The notes below the pieces were generated by a model. The model had not been told where the DNA came from. It saw only the letters and a program-made list of their open reading frames with translations, and did not search any database. From Podarcis filfolensis (taxonomy: Eukaryota): a stretch of DNA of 64,000 nucleotides. The stretch lies in the NCBI GenBank assembly GCA_964270895.1, contig OZ185435.1. One strand, given 5' to 3'. This document shows positions 3,941 to 55,799 of the stretch, in pieces (position 1 is the first letter of the stretch; each line of letters starts with the position of its first letter). A program made the translations under genes and the position numbers.

Positions 3941-3970
3941 CCTAGTGATTTAAGGAAACATCATAGAAAG
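3941..3970 (+). CDS. PPFIA1: PPFIA1 30-nt cassette microexon PSDLRKHHRK
   Basis: ctgtcag|CCT...AAG|gtaaat; phase 0/0; matches the PSDLRKHRRK segment of liprin-alpha paralogues. Confidence 0.85.
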
Positions 3971-7162: not shown

Positions 7163-8645
7163 TTTCCTGTTCATTTTATCACTATTATTATATGACGCAT
7201 TGGGAACTGAGAAACAGCTGTAATTTGAAATAATAATATAAATAAATAAATAATCTTTGCTGGTACACCGAGTCTCAGGACCTGAGTGAATAACATGGGT
7301 ACAGAGTGGGACAGGGGAAAGGTTGTTAGAGGAAATTCATTTTGTGTTATCCTGTAAGTAGAAAAATAAATGCATTGCTCGTCTTGTCAGTCAGTGTTCT
7401 GTCTATCTTTTATTCACCCATAGTGCATCACCATACACTATCATATTCATTTTTATCTATATTAAGTGCTTTTCAAGTTTTAGTTTTACATTTTATTTTC
7501 TTTATTTCCTTTTAAATTTTCCATTTGGTGTGGTAGTGCAAAATCAGGGTAAGTTGATTTTAATTTAACTTTTGCAGAATGTGAATGTGTGATGTATTGG
7601 GAAACTCTTTTTTAAAAGATTTGTGTTAAAACATCAGCCATTACCTTTTTGAATTATTTTCCTTGCAAGATTCTAAAGAACATTCTGCTGAAACATTTTC
7701 AGCAAAATCCTGCCAGCACGTTCATGAATTAGGTATAATTCATGAATCCTGCCATAACTTGTTAGTGTGCTGTCAAACAAAAATTCTTGACATAAATTCT
7801 TTAGTCCTAGCATTTGATTTTAAACTGTTTGAGTTGATTTTTTTTTTAATGTATTGCAAAAATGTACTTTTGTAGTGGGTGCTGTTGTCAACCGAAGAAG
7901 AGTGAATCAGTTCGGCTACAGAACAGTCAAGTTCCTCAGCTCATCTACCATTATACTCCCTAGCATTTTCACATATAGTTTCTCCCTTCACTGTGTCTAA
8001 TGTGTATTTAGAAAATGAGCATATGTTTTAAATTAGAGAACATGCATTCATAGTCATACAATAAAATAAGGTAGAAAATAGTTTCGGCCCTCTTCTGTTT
8101 CGTTTTCGAATTTTAAGGGATGGTACTTCTCAAATTGTGTTAGGAACCCTTAGAATCCTCAATATCATAAGAGTTCTTAAGGGAAAAGATCACTAATAGA
8201 CTTTCCCAAAAGATAGCATTCCCCACACCGCTTAAAAAAGCAGAACCCCAAAAGAGTGTTGCATGCATTTACTTAATATACTTGTCAGTGGTTCTTGGTA
8301 ACAGTAAATACAGGTTTTGAAACCCCTTCATATTGAGGCTGCCCAAACCTTTCCTGTAAAAACTATTCCCCCCTAGGTAGTGCTTGTCTAGTGCACCTGC
8401 ACATGATAACTAATTTAGACCAGGAGCTTCAGCAGTGTAATGGATTCTGCTTTCCAAAGGTCTGGTGCAATCCATTATTCTAATGTTACTTTTCTACTTA
8501 ACTCATGCAGTGTGCTTGCCATGCTGCTGTCACTCTTGGACAATTTGCTGTGTTCATAGAGTTGCTGAAACAAAGGGGGAAATCACCGGAGGACAATCAG
8601 TAAAAATATAAGCACTTCACAAGTATATTTTGCTGTTTTTTAAAG

Positions 8646-8727
8646 GCATGAACTGCTTGAGGAAGCCCGGAGGCAAGGTTTACCCTTTGCTCAGTGGGAT
8701 GGGCCAACTGTGGTTGTCTGGTTAGAG
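8646..8727 (+). CDS. PPFIA1: PPFIA1 exon [27 protein letters not shown] (start of SAM1)
   Basis: taaag|G ... GAG|gtaagg; 82 nt, phase 2 to 0. Confidence 0.95.
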
Positions 8728-8791
8728 GTAAGGAGTCTTTACAATAATAAACTCAGTGCAGCATGGCTTCTAACTTGAAACTTGTAGGTGA

Positions 8792-9055
<264 letters not shown>

Positions 9056-10952
9056 TAGCATATCTTTTAGAATTCTGCTTTTTGTGCAGGTCTGCATTAA
9101 AAAAGACAAATATAATAAAATAAAAATAAAGTTAGGGATAGTTCTTAGAAAATGACAAAATGAAGTGACCTGTTGAAACAAGTTTGCAAAAAGTTATGGT
9201 TAGTAACTGTGCTTAAAAAAGTAATGACTTCAGGAAGAATGCCAGTTTTAGGCAGGTTCTTGGGATCATTTATGGCATGCTAAGATTTAAAGGCATGTTT
9301 GAAATGTTAGGCAACGCTAATATTTTTAACTAGATGTTTGTTACTGCAAGCAGGGGTCCACAATTTTGCTCACCATGATGAGTATCCTATGTCCTTCTGT
9401 TGAGCAGGACAAACCTCCAGCCTCCCAAATTTGGAGCTGGAGAATGGGGCAAGTATCATCCACACAGTACTGCTCCTTTTCTAAGGCTTTCCAAGCACTT
9501 TGGAAGCACAGCAGCAAAGCAACCCCCAACCCTCATCTCAGTTTAGAATATTTTGGAGCAGAGATCCTTTTGTGTTTCTGGCTCTGGAGAAGAGGTGTGG
9601 GGCTTGATTTTACCATGTTCTTCCAGGACACTTGGAGTACCTTGTATAACACAACACAGTTTCTGGGATTCAAAAGGGAGGAGGGGATTCCTTTGAAAGG
9701 CACCCGACTTAGATTGGGGATAAAACCTGTCCTGGGGGGAAAGGCAGAGTCCTGACAAGTCAAACCTTTGGTTGGCTACCAAGGCCAGCCAAAATTTGTG
9801 AACCCAGTATTTAAAGATACAGTACCACCCTATTTCAGGCATGTTACATGAAAGCAATCCCCTTTTAAAAGTGGAACTAAAGAAAGTTGTACCTGTGTTG
9901 TATTCTTGTGTGGGGTGGGGGCACATGTTGAAGGCAGGTTGTTTTACCTGCCACAATTGAATCACATTTCATTATTTATATCTGGGGTGCAGAATGTCAG
10001 CCAGTTCAGTGGGGCCTTGATAAATACTGTGCTGTGGATGTGCATACAGATGCAAATCTGCATCCATATAGGCTACATATGCACATCTCATTGTGGGGCT
10101 GGAGTGAGAGGAATATCTGCTGTGTTTGTAGAGTGATTTGAAAGAAAACTGACTGACAAAGAATAAGCAGGATCCATTTCATGTTAGGATCCAGAGTTCC
10201 TGTGCTCACGGAACAATTATTGCCACATATGCTCTTGGCTTATCATAAATATATGTTATGTATATTTATGTATTATATTATGTATAAACTTAATCTGATT
10301 GCATTCTATATAATTTGGTCTCAAAAGCAACCTGCCTAAACTGAGGTGGTTCACATATAATGCCAGCCATGATTTGGTGTTACATGACTGATCTTCAAAC
10401 TCTGGTTTGCAATCCTGATTTAGAGCAAAGGCAAGCCATAGTTTTTCGGATGTAACAAAAATCTATGGTTTACCATAAACCTGTATGTACTTTGGAGTGT
10501 GCAAAGGGAGACATGAGTACACAAACACAACTTGTTCAAGTACTGCCAACCATGATTTGGCATTGCATGTGAATTGGCACATAGTATACAAGGGGATACA
10601 GTAAGTTTCTTCAGAAGGATAGATGCACTCTAAGGAACTAAAATGAAGTATCCCAAAGTGTTACTTGGCCCTGCTAAGTGTAAGAAGTACACCTAGAAGT
10701 CATATTATGAGGAATTATACTTTTTCTAATTTTGCTTAAATACAGGGTATACATTAAGTTGTTATTTGAAGGGAAATGTTTGCTTGCAGGCTTGCATCTT
10801 ACATCAGTCTGCACTTAACAATCTAGAAACCATTGCTTTTGCCCATGCCTGCTCCTTATATGTACCTGTTGCTTATATATTCTGCAACCTTTCCTCTTTG
10901 TTACTGCTTTCCTTTCATTGGATGTGATTGGTTCACTTTGGGGTCATATTAG

Positions 10953-11015
10953 ACCACAGGAAATGTCTGGGTAACACATGAAGAAATGGAAAATCTTACA
11001 TCTACACCACAAACG
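10953..11015 (+). CDS. PPFIA1: PPFIA1 63-nt cassette exon TTGNVWVTHEEMENLTSTPQT (SAM1-SAM2 linker insertion)
   Basis: tattag|ACC...ACG|gttagt; phase 0/0; GNVWVTHEEM matches the liprin-alpha linker insertion. Confidence 0.88.
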
Positions 11016-11544
11016 GTTAGTTATAGCACTGAACCTTTTTGTGTTTACAGTGCTTTTCCCACTTCTTGAGTGCTTGAATCATGTGCCTCTTAATGTCTCT
11101 GAAAAGAGTAGAAATATTAATTCTTCTTGGTTATGGCCTATTTTAATTACTAACCTTCTCTGAAATGTATAATTATGCTGTAAAATGTTTTTCCACCAAG
11201 GTCATCATGGGGTTGGGAGGCACTGAAGGCAAAATCAGTGCATTGATTTTGGAATTCTTAAGATGTTGCCTAATATTTTACTTGGGTTTACAGCTAAAGG
11301 CTGCTTCTTGTGTGGATAAACTAAGCAGCATGTGGTGCTTCAATTTACACAAGGGTATAAATATATTGAGAAATTCTTATGTACATAATTTTGAATGCAT
11401 GATGCTTGCATTCCTAACAATTAGCATGCCATTATTTTGCCTTTCCATTATGGCCACATTCCAGAGGTGTCATTTTATGCGCAGAAAGGACTATGTACAC
11501 TGTTCATTGCTAGGATACATACACTAAATGTGACATAATTTTAT

Positions 11545-11675
11545 TATGTATTTTGTGGTTTTATATCTTGGATTTTATTCTGTAAACTACCCTGAGACCC
11601 CCGGGTATAGGGTGGTATATAAATTCAATCAATCAATCAATAATAATAATAATAATTAATAATAATAATAATTTC
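11545..11675 (+). mobile_element. LINE (L2-like) 3' tail ending in (TCAA)n(AAT)n
   Basis: ctgtaaactaccctgag...gggtggtatataaat followed by a microsatellite tail. Confidence 0.55.
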
Positions 11676-11861
11676 AACAGCCATAATACTTGTTTTGAGA
11701 AGTTTATTGACATCAAGCCTTCTACAGGTTTGCACAGTTCAGCCATTTGATTATTTTTTGCACACTGGACTGCGGCCATCACCTTGAATTTTCTTGCATT
11801 ACTAAACTTACAAATACTAACATTTGTGTGTTCTTTTGCTTTTCTAATTACGTAACATCAG

Positions 11862-11888
11862 GAAGATGTGGAAGGAAGCTGGGCTCAG
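11862..11888 (+). CDS. PPFIA1: PPFIA1 27-nt microexon EDVEGSWAQ
   Basis: catcag|GAA...CAG|gttgga; phase 0/0; matches the EEGSWAQ segment of liprin-alpha. Confidence 0.85.
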
Positions 11889-12943
11889 GTTGGAGACTTT
11901 TCTTTTAAACCTTCTGTGTAAAACATCAAAGTTTATTTAACCATAGAAAACTTATTTTTTAAAGAAAAAACACATTGAAAAACATTTTTGAGGGGAAACT
12001 AATGAGTAAATATTTCAAATGTTAACTCACCCAAAATTTATTTTGAGAAATTATTTGGCATGGAGGTTGGCATTATATTACCTACTTTTGAGGCTTGTTC
12101 TCCTGGAGTTCATCACCGGCTTGTGATAGCACAGCAACAAAATGTGTGCCTTTTGCTGATTTTTGTTTCTGTCACAACGCATTCAGATTCAACTAAAATC
12201 TGTTTAAATAAGTTAATAACATCTTTCTAACAGCAGCCACTTCCCACTTTCCTAGCTGGCCAATGCCAGTGATCCACATTGTAAACACGGGAAGGGATGG
12301 CTTCACATGACATGGTAAGCCAAAATACGACTTCAGTGAGGCTGTGCAAACATGCAGGGGAGCTCAGAGCTCATTTGCCCCTCCCTACTCATTTTTACAA
12401 CTGCACCATGCTGACTAAGCTAAAGTTTGGCTTTAATGTATCATCCAAACCAGGAATCATGGTTAAGCCATCCTCTCACTAACCATGAGCTGTAGGCAAG
12501 AACAAACTTCTTTATAGCTCATGCTTAGTCAGAAGAGAACTTAGTTTTGCTCAGTTCAAGGCAGCAAAATGAAAGTCCAGAGGAGAGGAAAACAGCTCCT
12601 CTCCAAGAGCAGGTTCTCACAGTCTTACTAAGTCATTGTTTGCCGTACCCAGTTGTGCAAAGCAAGTCAAGGTTTGAAATGGGGAATTGAAATGTACCAG
12701 GAAGCTGCAGCCCTGGCACTATCAGAGAGTTTGACGATGTGCATCTTCAAATCATACTTCACTGTTCACCTAAGTAAATGCTAGCTGCTGTATAAATAAA
12801 GTGTGAAGTGGTTTTAATTTTTAAAACATTGCTTTGCATCTTCAGTAGTTACAACCTCTTTCTTGTGTGAAACTGTAAGGCACTGACTAAATATTTTACA
12901 CTTTCTTATTTAAAATTACACTTCAATGGTTTTCTTTAAATAG

Positions 12944-13120
<177 letters not shown>

Positions 13121-13216
13121 TAAATAGATTTAAAATAGTCTTTACTAATGAGCATTTTGTCTGTGCATTTCAACATACTTTTACTAATGCCTATTTCCTT
13201 TTTAATCTTTTAACAG

Positions 13217-13314
13217 AAATAGTTTCCAGTGTGGCATTATGTGTCTGCGGAGATTAAATTATGACCGAAAAGAACTTGAAAGAAGAAGAGAAGAAGGTTT
13301 GAATGAGATTAAAG
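13217..13314 (+). CDS. PPFIA1: PPFIA1 exon NSFQCGIMCLRRLNYDRKELERRREEGLNEIK
   Basis: taacag|A ... AAAG|gtagcc; 98 nt, phase 2 to 1. Confidence 0.95.
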
Positions 13315-13772
13315 GTAGCCATTTTCTTTCCTGGGTTTGACTCTACTTATGAGAAGTATATGAAATCATGGTCCTATATTTTCTGTTGGTTGAAAAATCT
13401 CCCAAGTTGCAAGTATGTTCAATGGTAGATTCATGCCAATGTTATATTTTGTATAGAGCTGGTGTTTATGGGGTCTAGCATAGTGTTGTTAGGTCCTGTG
13501 TTCAGAACGTTTTGACTGCATACTGGAACCACTAAATATATGGTGTGCTATCTAAAATACCCTTGAACTGTAAACAAGTGCCTATATTTCTTTTCCTTCC
13601 TAAACAATTATATGTACAACTACTGGCCCTATTCATTTGTGAAAGAAGGAAGAATATGCGCAGTAAAAAAACTAGTGCTCTTCTGATCTCACCCTTGTGG
13701 TGCAATTTAATGGGGCAAGATACAGGTATTCTAAATAGTACTTACTCTCATAGTTGCAAGAATACAGTAGTT

Positions 13773-54650: not shown

Positions 54651-55662
54651 ATAAAGGTGTGTAGGCAACACCTAATGGTATCTCAGAAGCCAAGAAGGTA
54701 GGGTGAGGCTACATCTCACAGCTTTGCTATATGGCAGAGAAGTATTTTCTGCTTAAATCACTTACTCTGATTGAGACACTGAATTTCAGTTTGTGGTAAT
54801 TCGTTACACCAAATAGTTGGCCACATAGCGTTCCAAAGCAGAATCCACATTGTCTTTTGGGGAAAGGGTTATTAGTTCCACCTCTAGGTTCAAAAATATA
54901 TTTCCACATCTGTGGCAGGAGTTAGTAGATGATAAAAATAACTGGTAACTCTCCCAGTTTTATGAAAGATTTTACGTAAGCATTTTTGTTTTGCTCTTGG
55001 GATTTGGATTACCCTTTCTTCTGCAAGGTTTGTGTCACTCACCTTACTCGCTTTCCAGTATGCTGAGTATATTCCCGAGAATCCTTGCCAAACAGTCTCC
55101 CTTTTGCAATCTGCTTCAAAGGGATTTCCCTTTTGGTAAGCATTCCACTGCAGGATTGCCATGCTAGGTGATCTGGAGGACAAAGACCCCAGTTCCACAG
55201 CAAATCAACAAAGGGTCTGGCAGAGTTGTCATGTGAATGCCAAACACACTTATTCATCATGCCTGACCATTAAAAAACAAGTATCCTATCTGGAAGTAGT
55301 CCTTGGTGATGGCATGATCTGGCACACACATGCCAGGAACAATCTTCAATTGTTTCAATCTTGTTCTCGTGTACCACCTAGGCAAAAGAATCACACGTTT
55401 CTCATAGAATTAAGGTATTTCATATGGAAGTTTGGGATCTCGGGTGCAATCTAGAGTTGTGTTCCCATGTCTTGGGTGTAACCCATACCCTGCAACACCA
55501 AAGACCCTTTCCCTCTTTATAACCATCAGTGAGAACCCTGCTTGAACACAGATTAACCAATTGCAAATACTATTATTTAGTACCTTACCCATTCCCCCAC
55601 CCCACCCCCTTTTATATCTGTATGAGATACTAACTGGAGAGTTGCTTCTGCTCTTTCCACAG

Positions 55663-55799
55663 CTGGGGATGATGAAATTTCCTTTGATCCTGACGACATC
55701 ATCACAAACATTGAAATGATCGATGATGGCTGGTGGAGGGGAGTGTGCAAAGGCAGATACGGGCTCTTCCCAGCTAATTATGTCGAGCTGAGGCAATAG
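55663..55799 (+). CDS. CTTN: CTTN last coding exon [45 protein letters not shown] (SH3)
   Basis: TACTAAC branch point at 55628-55634; ccacag|CT...TAG. Confidence 0.97.

Follow-up and report, generated by a model that had tools for sequence, protein, structure and literature searches.

Does the liprin-alpha-1 gene, whose product the literature treats as blind to CASK, hold an optional exon for the very loop by which its paralogues dock on that synaptic scaffold, and is such an exon used? The question is raised by a 63-nt segment of the window, i.e., of the whole stretch of 64,000 nt of Podarcis filfolensis DNA analysed here, which an earlier note had read as a cassette exon between the SAM1 and SAM2 exons. 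In the following, we consider the identity of the gene and its exon layout, the RNA evidence and the putative splicing control, the expected CASK docking of the encoded loop, and finally its age and what it would mean for the liprin-alpha family.

Host gene and exon layout between SAM1 and SAM2

Within the 64 kb, liprin-alpha exons are found on the + strand from about 957 to 20998. They are followed downstream on the same strand by a complete cortactin gene (CTTN, 31480-55800), whose N-terminus is encoded near 31.5 kb, with the cortactin repeats in the range 34.7-45 kb and its SH3 domain located at 55626-55796 (+). CTTN is the normal neighbour of PPFIA1. Among proteins, the best matches are given by "liprin-alpha-1" isoforms of lacertids (Podarcis muralis, P. 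raffonei, Lacerta agilis and Zootoca vivipara), with about 96% over 14 exon matches, compared to 66% for the liprin-alpha-3 representative (P0050). Given the downstream neighbour and the top protein matches, the host gene of the 63-nt exon is PPFIA1 rather than PPFIA2-4, as the earlier note had it. Beside these genes, remnants of CR1/L2-type LINE reverse transcriptase were observed near 53.8-54.4 kb.

The features from the end of SAM1 to the start of SAM2 are listed in Table 1.

Table 1. Features of the PPFIA1 locus between the SAM1 and SAM2 exons (window coordinates)
Feature	Position	Strand	Evidence and remarks
Constitutive exon, end of SAM1	8819..9019	+	Ends in phase 0; 67/67 residues aligned to 3TAC_B 50-116
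Conserved block in the intron before the cassette	10861..10952	+	Near-identical in Pogona; about 78% identity in Dipodomys
63-nt phase 0/0 cassette exon, TTGNVWVTHEEMENLTSTPQT, VWV loop	10953..11015	+	AG/GT borders, RNA joint, homology
Conserved downstream intron with conserved weak donor (ACG/gttagt)	11016..11535	+	Alignability to Pogona
GCATG cluster, three copies	11328..11428	+	11328, 11397 (TGCATG from 11396), 11424
27-nt phase 0/0 microexon, EDVEGSWAQ	11862..11888	+	AG/GT borders; orthologues; RefSeq isoforms
Constitutive exon, start of SAM2	12944..13119	+	Phase 0 start, aaatag/ACC TTA GCC

The SAM1 exon, for which the joint 8728 to 8819 is seen in RNA, runs to ...PPTSRT and is followed by gtaagt. 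The cassette is preceded by tattag (tattag/ACC) and its 63 nt contain no stop. Since the exon before it ends in phase 0 and the exon after it starts in phase 0, the cassette stays in frame whether it is included or skipped. In the protein P0414, it corresponds to residues 966-986, with a SAM domain match at 1002-1065. The observation of a 63-nt phase 0/0 exon between SAM1 and SAM2 is thus confirmed by its borders, open frame and flanking phases; together with its flanking features, it is correct far beyond chance.

The cassette of the earlier note stands, but a second element was overlooked, i.e., a 27-nt microexon that is located 846 nt downstream and was found by scanning the intron for in-frame AG...GT segments. 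It contributes the latter half of the SAM1-SAM2 insertion, EDVEGSWAQ, which resembles KESEEGSWAQ of liprin-alpha-2 and equals ETKEISWEQ of liprin-alpha-3 in length. The order of SAM1 exon, cassette, microexon and SAM2 exon recurs in the DNA of Pogona, Dipodomys and Acanthisitta, where the splice sites are conserved as well, and lacertid RefSeq isoforms hold exactly TTGNVWVTHEEMENLTSTPQT plus EDVEGSWAQ, including a lacertid-specific Val within the microexon. Among the 303 liprin-alpha-1 proteins that could be classified, 121 contain both exons, 66 only the cassette and 116 neither of them, while the microexon alone is found in 0 cases.

Further small elements were noticed in the same gene. A 30-nt in-frame microexon encoding PSDLRKHHRK is found at 3941-3970 (+); its borders are AG/GT, and a TGCATG is located 12 nt upstream of it. 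The block is 92-93% identical to Pogona and Dipodomys, and some liprin-alpha-1 isoforms of lacertids and of Rhineura include the peptide. Just before SAM1, a 12-nt microexon (TGCAAAATCAGG, 7537-7548 (+)) changes K to NAKSG. Its block is conserved with Pogona, and it is present in the Podarcis muralis isoform X4 and in two Lacerta agilis isoforms. The intron between two SAM2 exons (13120-13216) is very short with 97 nt and is covered by spliced contigs in the RNA runs X1 and X5 introduced below. Finally, 29 of 120 mammalian liprin-alpha-1 models show an extra Gln at the SAM1/SAM2 junction (TQT instead of TT), which suggests a tandem CAG/CAG acceptor (near 88472 of the Dipodomys locus L002); the lizard SAM2 acceptor (aaatag) offers no such tandem CAG/CAG option.

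Alternative splicing and putative enhancer control

To assess the splicing of the cassette, four runs (X1, X5, X23 and X24, with coded tissues) of a closely related lizard were compared to the range 8500-13400. The intron contigs of this relative differ from the window by about 2%. X1 and X5 behave as RNA, i.e., their exon contigs reach depths >100 with splices where expected, compared to depths of about 10 for intron contigs.

An X1 contig joins 11015 to 12944 (GT..AG) at a depth of 50.9, and the skipping joint from 9019 to 12944 is present in the same run at 45.5, where contig depths are a poor gauge of isoform level. In accordance with inclusion, the X1 depth over 10960-11123 is 40.7 compared to 7.6-14.6 in the adjoining bins. 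X5 provides the skipping joint only (depth 149) with a flat depth across the cassette, and X24 shows four skipping reads and zero inclusion reads at very low coverage. For X23, which has very thin read cover, no joint at the cassette is found among those listed; the same holds for the upstream inclusion joint 9019 to 10953 among the joints listed overall. In the two bulk RNA runs analysed at the level of raw reads, inclusion reads were absent, at very low coverage. None of the four runs shows the microexon in spliced form, and the X1 inclusion contig passes straight from 11015 to 12944. Given the included and skipped joints in X1 and the skipped form only in X5 and X24, the cassette is spliced in and its splicing is alternative, as had been proposed, with usage differing among samples.

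Within the intron between cassette and microexon, a repeat fragment (11539-11750) is covered at high depth on both strands in all four RNA runs, with 11539, 11570 and 11602 as loose ends. An (AAT)n/(CAAT)n simple repeat comes next, and the stretch forms an insertion relative to Pogona within the otherwise conserved intron.

Both splice sites of the cassette are poor. The acceptor is weak, with its tract broken by GGGG and a pyrimidine-rich tract placed 30-80 nt upstream, and the +3 base of the donor is a pyrimidine throughout the four species compared (window, Pogona, Dipodomys and Acanthisitta). The intron between cassette and microexon is 74% blastn-alignable to Pogona, a value that nine further PPFIA1 introns fall short of with 1-15%. 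Even for the rodent Dipodomys, whose own cassette-to-microexon intron is 7% alignable to the window, an alignment is obtained for the 92 nt that precede the cassette and for about 55 nt ahead of the microexon.

The GCATG/TGCATG motifs that the earlier note had reported from the downstream intron are located where it placed them. Relative to the cassette, the window copies are found at +313, +382 and +409, i.e., 3 motifs against 1.10 expected for the whole intron (P about 0.1). On a smaller scale, at least three GCATG occur in 0.08% of 105-nt and in 2.7% of 500-nt segments of the 64 kb. Pogona shows three copies as well (+331, +399 and +427), each of which is aligned with a window motif. Dipodomys holds four (+289, +309, +333 and +343), three of them TGCATG, against 0.66 expected for its 463-nt intron (Poisson P about 0.005). 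Acanthisitta has one only (+459) in an intron with a 97-N gap, which makes the bird uninformative for the cluster.

The conserved cluster resembles an intronic splicing enhancer with RBFOX sites and, as a sequence pattern, supports a putative RBFOX-type control. Cassettes known to be activated by RBFOX via downstream (U)GCATG are alike in several respects, namely the three-GCATG cluster, weak splice sites, conservation among squamates and recurrence in a rodent. The differing feature is distance, since the window motifs, located 313-409 nt downstream, are farther away than the classic proximal window of such cassettes. This distance of more than 300 nt, along with a window count only weakly above expectation, counts against the RBFOX reading. 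Overall, we infer that inclusion is driven by a conserved intronic enhancer with RBFOX-type GCATG motifs acting on weak sites, most likely in neurons.

The same distance would be explained if inclusion depended mainly on other factors, e.g., SRRM4/nSR100, PTBP1 or NOVA, such that the GCATG cluster were a part or a passenger of a larger element. We regard this as possible, though we would not put it at even chances. It is in line with the conservation of the entire 846-nt intron with Pogona, which extends beyond the motifs, with the distant pyrimidine tract and 11 TGC within 200 nt upstream, and with the 27-nt partner microexon and its UGC-containing tract, both of the latter arrangements being typical of neural microexon control. 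What counts against it is the recurrence of a four-fold GCATG cluster in the rodent intron despite its 7% alignability.

We also considered a Ppfia1 event activated by RBPMS, RBFOX2 and MBNL in rat smooth-muscle cells, the one RBFOX2-linked event of this gene that our literature search yielded, as a direct record of the 63-nt cassette. This candidate was rejected: RT-PCR products of 215 and 139 bp are given in the supplement (PMC10570038, PMC6613909), and the exon concerned measures about 75 nt, such that the event is uninformative on the cassette.

The encoded loop and predicted CASK docking

The VWV motif of the liprin-alpha-2/-3 loop lies buried in a hydrophobic pocket within the CaM-kinase domain of CASK (PMC8044993, PMC10136522, PMC6994669), and liprin-alpha-2's isolated loop is reported to be enough to bind CASK (PMC6994669). 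Secondary contacts are made by S963/S968 of SAM1 and K1082 of SAM2, which meet R255/Y268 of CASK (PMC10136522). For liprin-alpha-1, the insertion is described as "not in liprin-alpha1" (PMC8044993), another source, with reference to Wei 2011, has CASK binding alpha-2 "and not" alpha-1 (PMC3678157), and CASK binding is drawn for alpha-2/3/4 only in a third (PMC13311821). The background given by the earlier note, i.e., a VWV loop that docks on CASK and a standard liprin-alpha-1 that does not bind it, agrees with this literature (PMC8044993, PMC3678157).

When the 21-aa peptide is compared to all PDB chains, matches are found only for liprin-alpha-2 (3TAC_B 118-135, SGNVWVTHEEMENLAAQA) and liprin-alpha-3 (6KIP and 6KR4, TGNVWMTHEEMESLTAA), with E about 1e-4 and placed right after PPTSRT. 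The 13-residue core GNVWVTHEEMENL shows no difference between the alpha-1 cassette and alpha-2, where the tryptophan of the shared VWV is the residue that enters the CASK pocket. The Val-Trp-Val motif is present in its conserved context GNVW.THEEME, and the lacertid SAM123 region (from P0414) aligns end to end with 3TAC_B. Beyond the loop, the SAM1 serines matching S963/S968 are kept in lacertid alpha-1 while SAM2 K1082 is replaced by R (numbering by offset from W981). Among the cassette-bearing alpha-1 proteins, the motif reads VWV in 130, VWL in 56 and IWV in 1; sauropsids mostly show VWV and mammals VWL.

The layout of the insertion is shared, too. The liprin-alpha-2 insertion (PDB 3TAC; Wei et al. 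2011 via PMC8044993 and PMC3678157) uses the same site after PPTSRT and the same 21-aa first exon. As in alpha-1, two exons are optional, i.e., the 334 aa of 3TAC compared to the 297 aa of 3TAD yield a difference of 37 aa, which equals 21 + 16. The second exon differs, with 9 aa (EDVEGSWAQ) in alpha-1 and 16 aa (KESEEGSWAQCPVFLQ) in alpha-2. The liprin-alpha-3 structures (6KIP, 6KR4) combine a 21-aa loop beginning with TGNVWMTHEEMESLTAA and the 9-aa ETKEISWEQ, and thus show the same lengths as alpha-1. They differ from it by VWM, and alpha-3 is brain-enriched while alpha-1 is broadly expressed with a standard cDNA that lacks both exons.

Judged by sequence, the 21-residue insert is a paralogue of the alpha-2/alpha-3 VWV loop. 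Because of its close identity to the alpha-2 loop, exon-containing alpha-1 is expected to dock on CASK as alpha-2/3/4 do. Two observations weigh against this prediction, i.e., mammalian alpha-1 shows VWL instead of VWV, and the SAM2 contact that is Lys in alpha-2 is Arg in lacertids. Brain data fit the existence of an insert-bearing neuronal alpha-1: blots show a "larger neuronal isoform" of liprin-alpha-1 (PMC11001580), and alpha-1 is recovered in brain co-precipitates of the MALS/CASK complex (PMC2171538), where neither source ties its observation to the exon.

The cassette could also be real and regulated while its main job is another one, e.g., the tuning of SAM123, the binding of another partner with a Trp pocket, or a differing competition of the Mint1/Caskin type. 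The mammalian VWL and the K1082 replacement are compatible with such a role, as is the variation of the last six cassette residues among species, and our literature search found no paper testing alpha-1 with the insert for CASK binding. Nevertheless, we consider it unlikely given that thirteen consecutive core residues are the same as in the CASK-contacting alpha-2 loop, that this loop is reported to suffice for binding in isolation, and that alpha-1 is recovered with the CASK complex from brain.

Age, annotation status and implications for the liprin-alpha family

The cassette is carried by 187 of the 303 classifiable "liprin-alpha-1" proteins that were fetched. These cover gar, coelacanth (UniProt H3AFH9), lungfish, frogs, axolotl, turtles and crocodilians as well as birds, squamates, monotremes, marsupials and placentals. 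The insert of the Podarcis muralis protein XP_028584345.1 is identical to that of the window, and predicted isoforms of Lacerta agilis (XP_033006247.1) and Zootoca vivipara (XP_034972826.1) contain exactly this cassette. It is also present in the full-length transcript P0300 (1223 aa, Met to VRTYSC), which was assembled from RNA of a salamander-like species. Genomic loci were compared for Pogona, Dipodomys and Acanthisitta, while primates enter via protein-search rows and the overall tally only.

It is hardly credible that the cassette is a pseudo-exon or an annotation artefact, i.e., a chance frame predicted by alpha-2 homology: many database entries are computed models, and the coelacanth UniProt model (P0010) even reads through the donor into the intron, but the RNA-contig junction with exact GT..AG borders refutes this unless the contig is chimeric, the assembled transcript P0300 has the exon, and lizard, bird and rodent DNA preserve both the exon and its splice sites.

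Given its distribution from gar and coelacanth to mammals, the cassette is no younger than the ancestor of bony vertebrates. It probably predates the duplications of the liprin-alpha genes, since alpha-2 and alpha-3 share the exon as seen above and alpha-4 is reported to have it (PMC8044993, PMC3678157). As a sequence, the cassette is already known: public isoform models of Podarcis, Lacerta, Zootoca and many other vertebrates contain it, such that it is not a discovery. The respective RefSeq and UniProt isoforms of alpha-1 match the cassette at the level of sequence; they are computed models whose insert bears no functional annotation. Set against the papers describing alpha-1 as lacking the insertion, they imply that this statement is true only of the skipped isoform. 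As a piece of sequence, the exon is unremarkable and on public record, and some value lies in the mismatch between the annotations and what the literature states on liprin-alpha-1.

The reading of the earlier note is sensible and in part borne out. We hold it probable that a joint explanation applies, in which the cassette, a conserved alternative PPFIA1 exon, acts as a CASK-competence switch under the control of an intronic enhancer. The cassette inserts 21 residues between SAM1 and SAM2 and thereby puts a Val-Trp-Val loop as in alpha-2 and alpha-3 on liprin-alpha-1. Splicing would toggle the protein between a CASK-blind and a CASK-competent scaffold. Inclusion would be brought about by the conserved enhancer between the two exons with its cluster of RBFOX-type motifs acting on the weak splice sites, most likely in neurons. 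We are evenly divided on the more specific version, namely that the lack of CASK binding ascribed to alpha-1 is true of the skipped isoform only, and that the 63-nt and 27-nt exons, as a pair that was present before the four liprin-alpha genes separated, give alpha-1 a working CASK loop in excitable cells under an enhancer with RBFOX motifs.

If true, this would account for the larger band of neuronal alpha-1 on blots and for the finding of alpha-1 within MALS/CASK complexes of the brain, and alpha-2/3/4 would not be alone in having the loop. Within the family, liprin-alpha-1 is the member with broad expression, and studies of synapse assembly employ it both as the "non-CASK-binding" control and for rescue. 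If neurons produce an alpha-1 that bears the CASK loop, work based on the standard cDNA would understate the role of alpha-1 at synapses, and the redundancy among the four liprins would be easier to explain.
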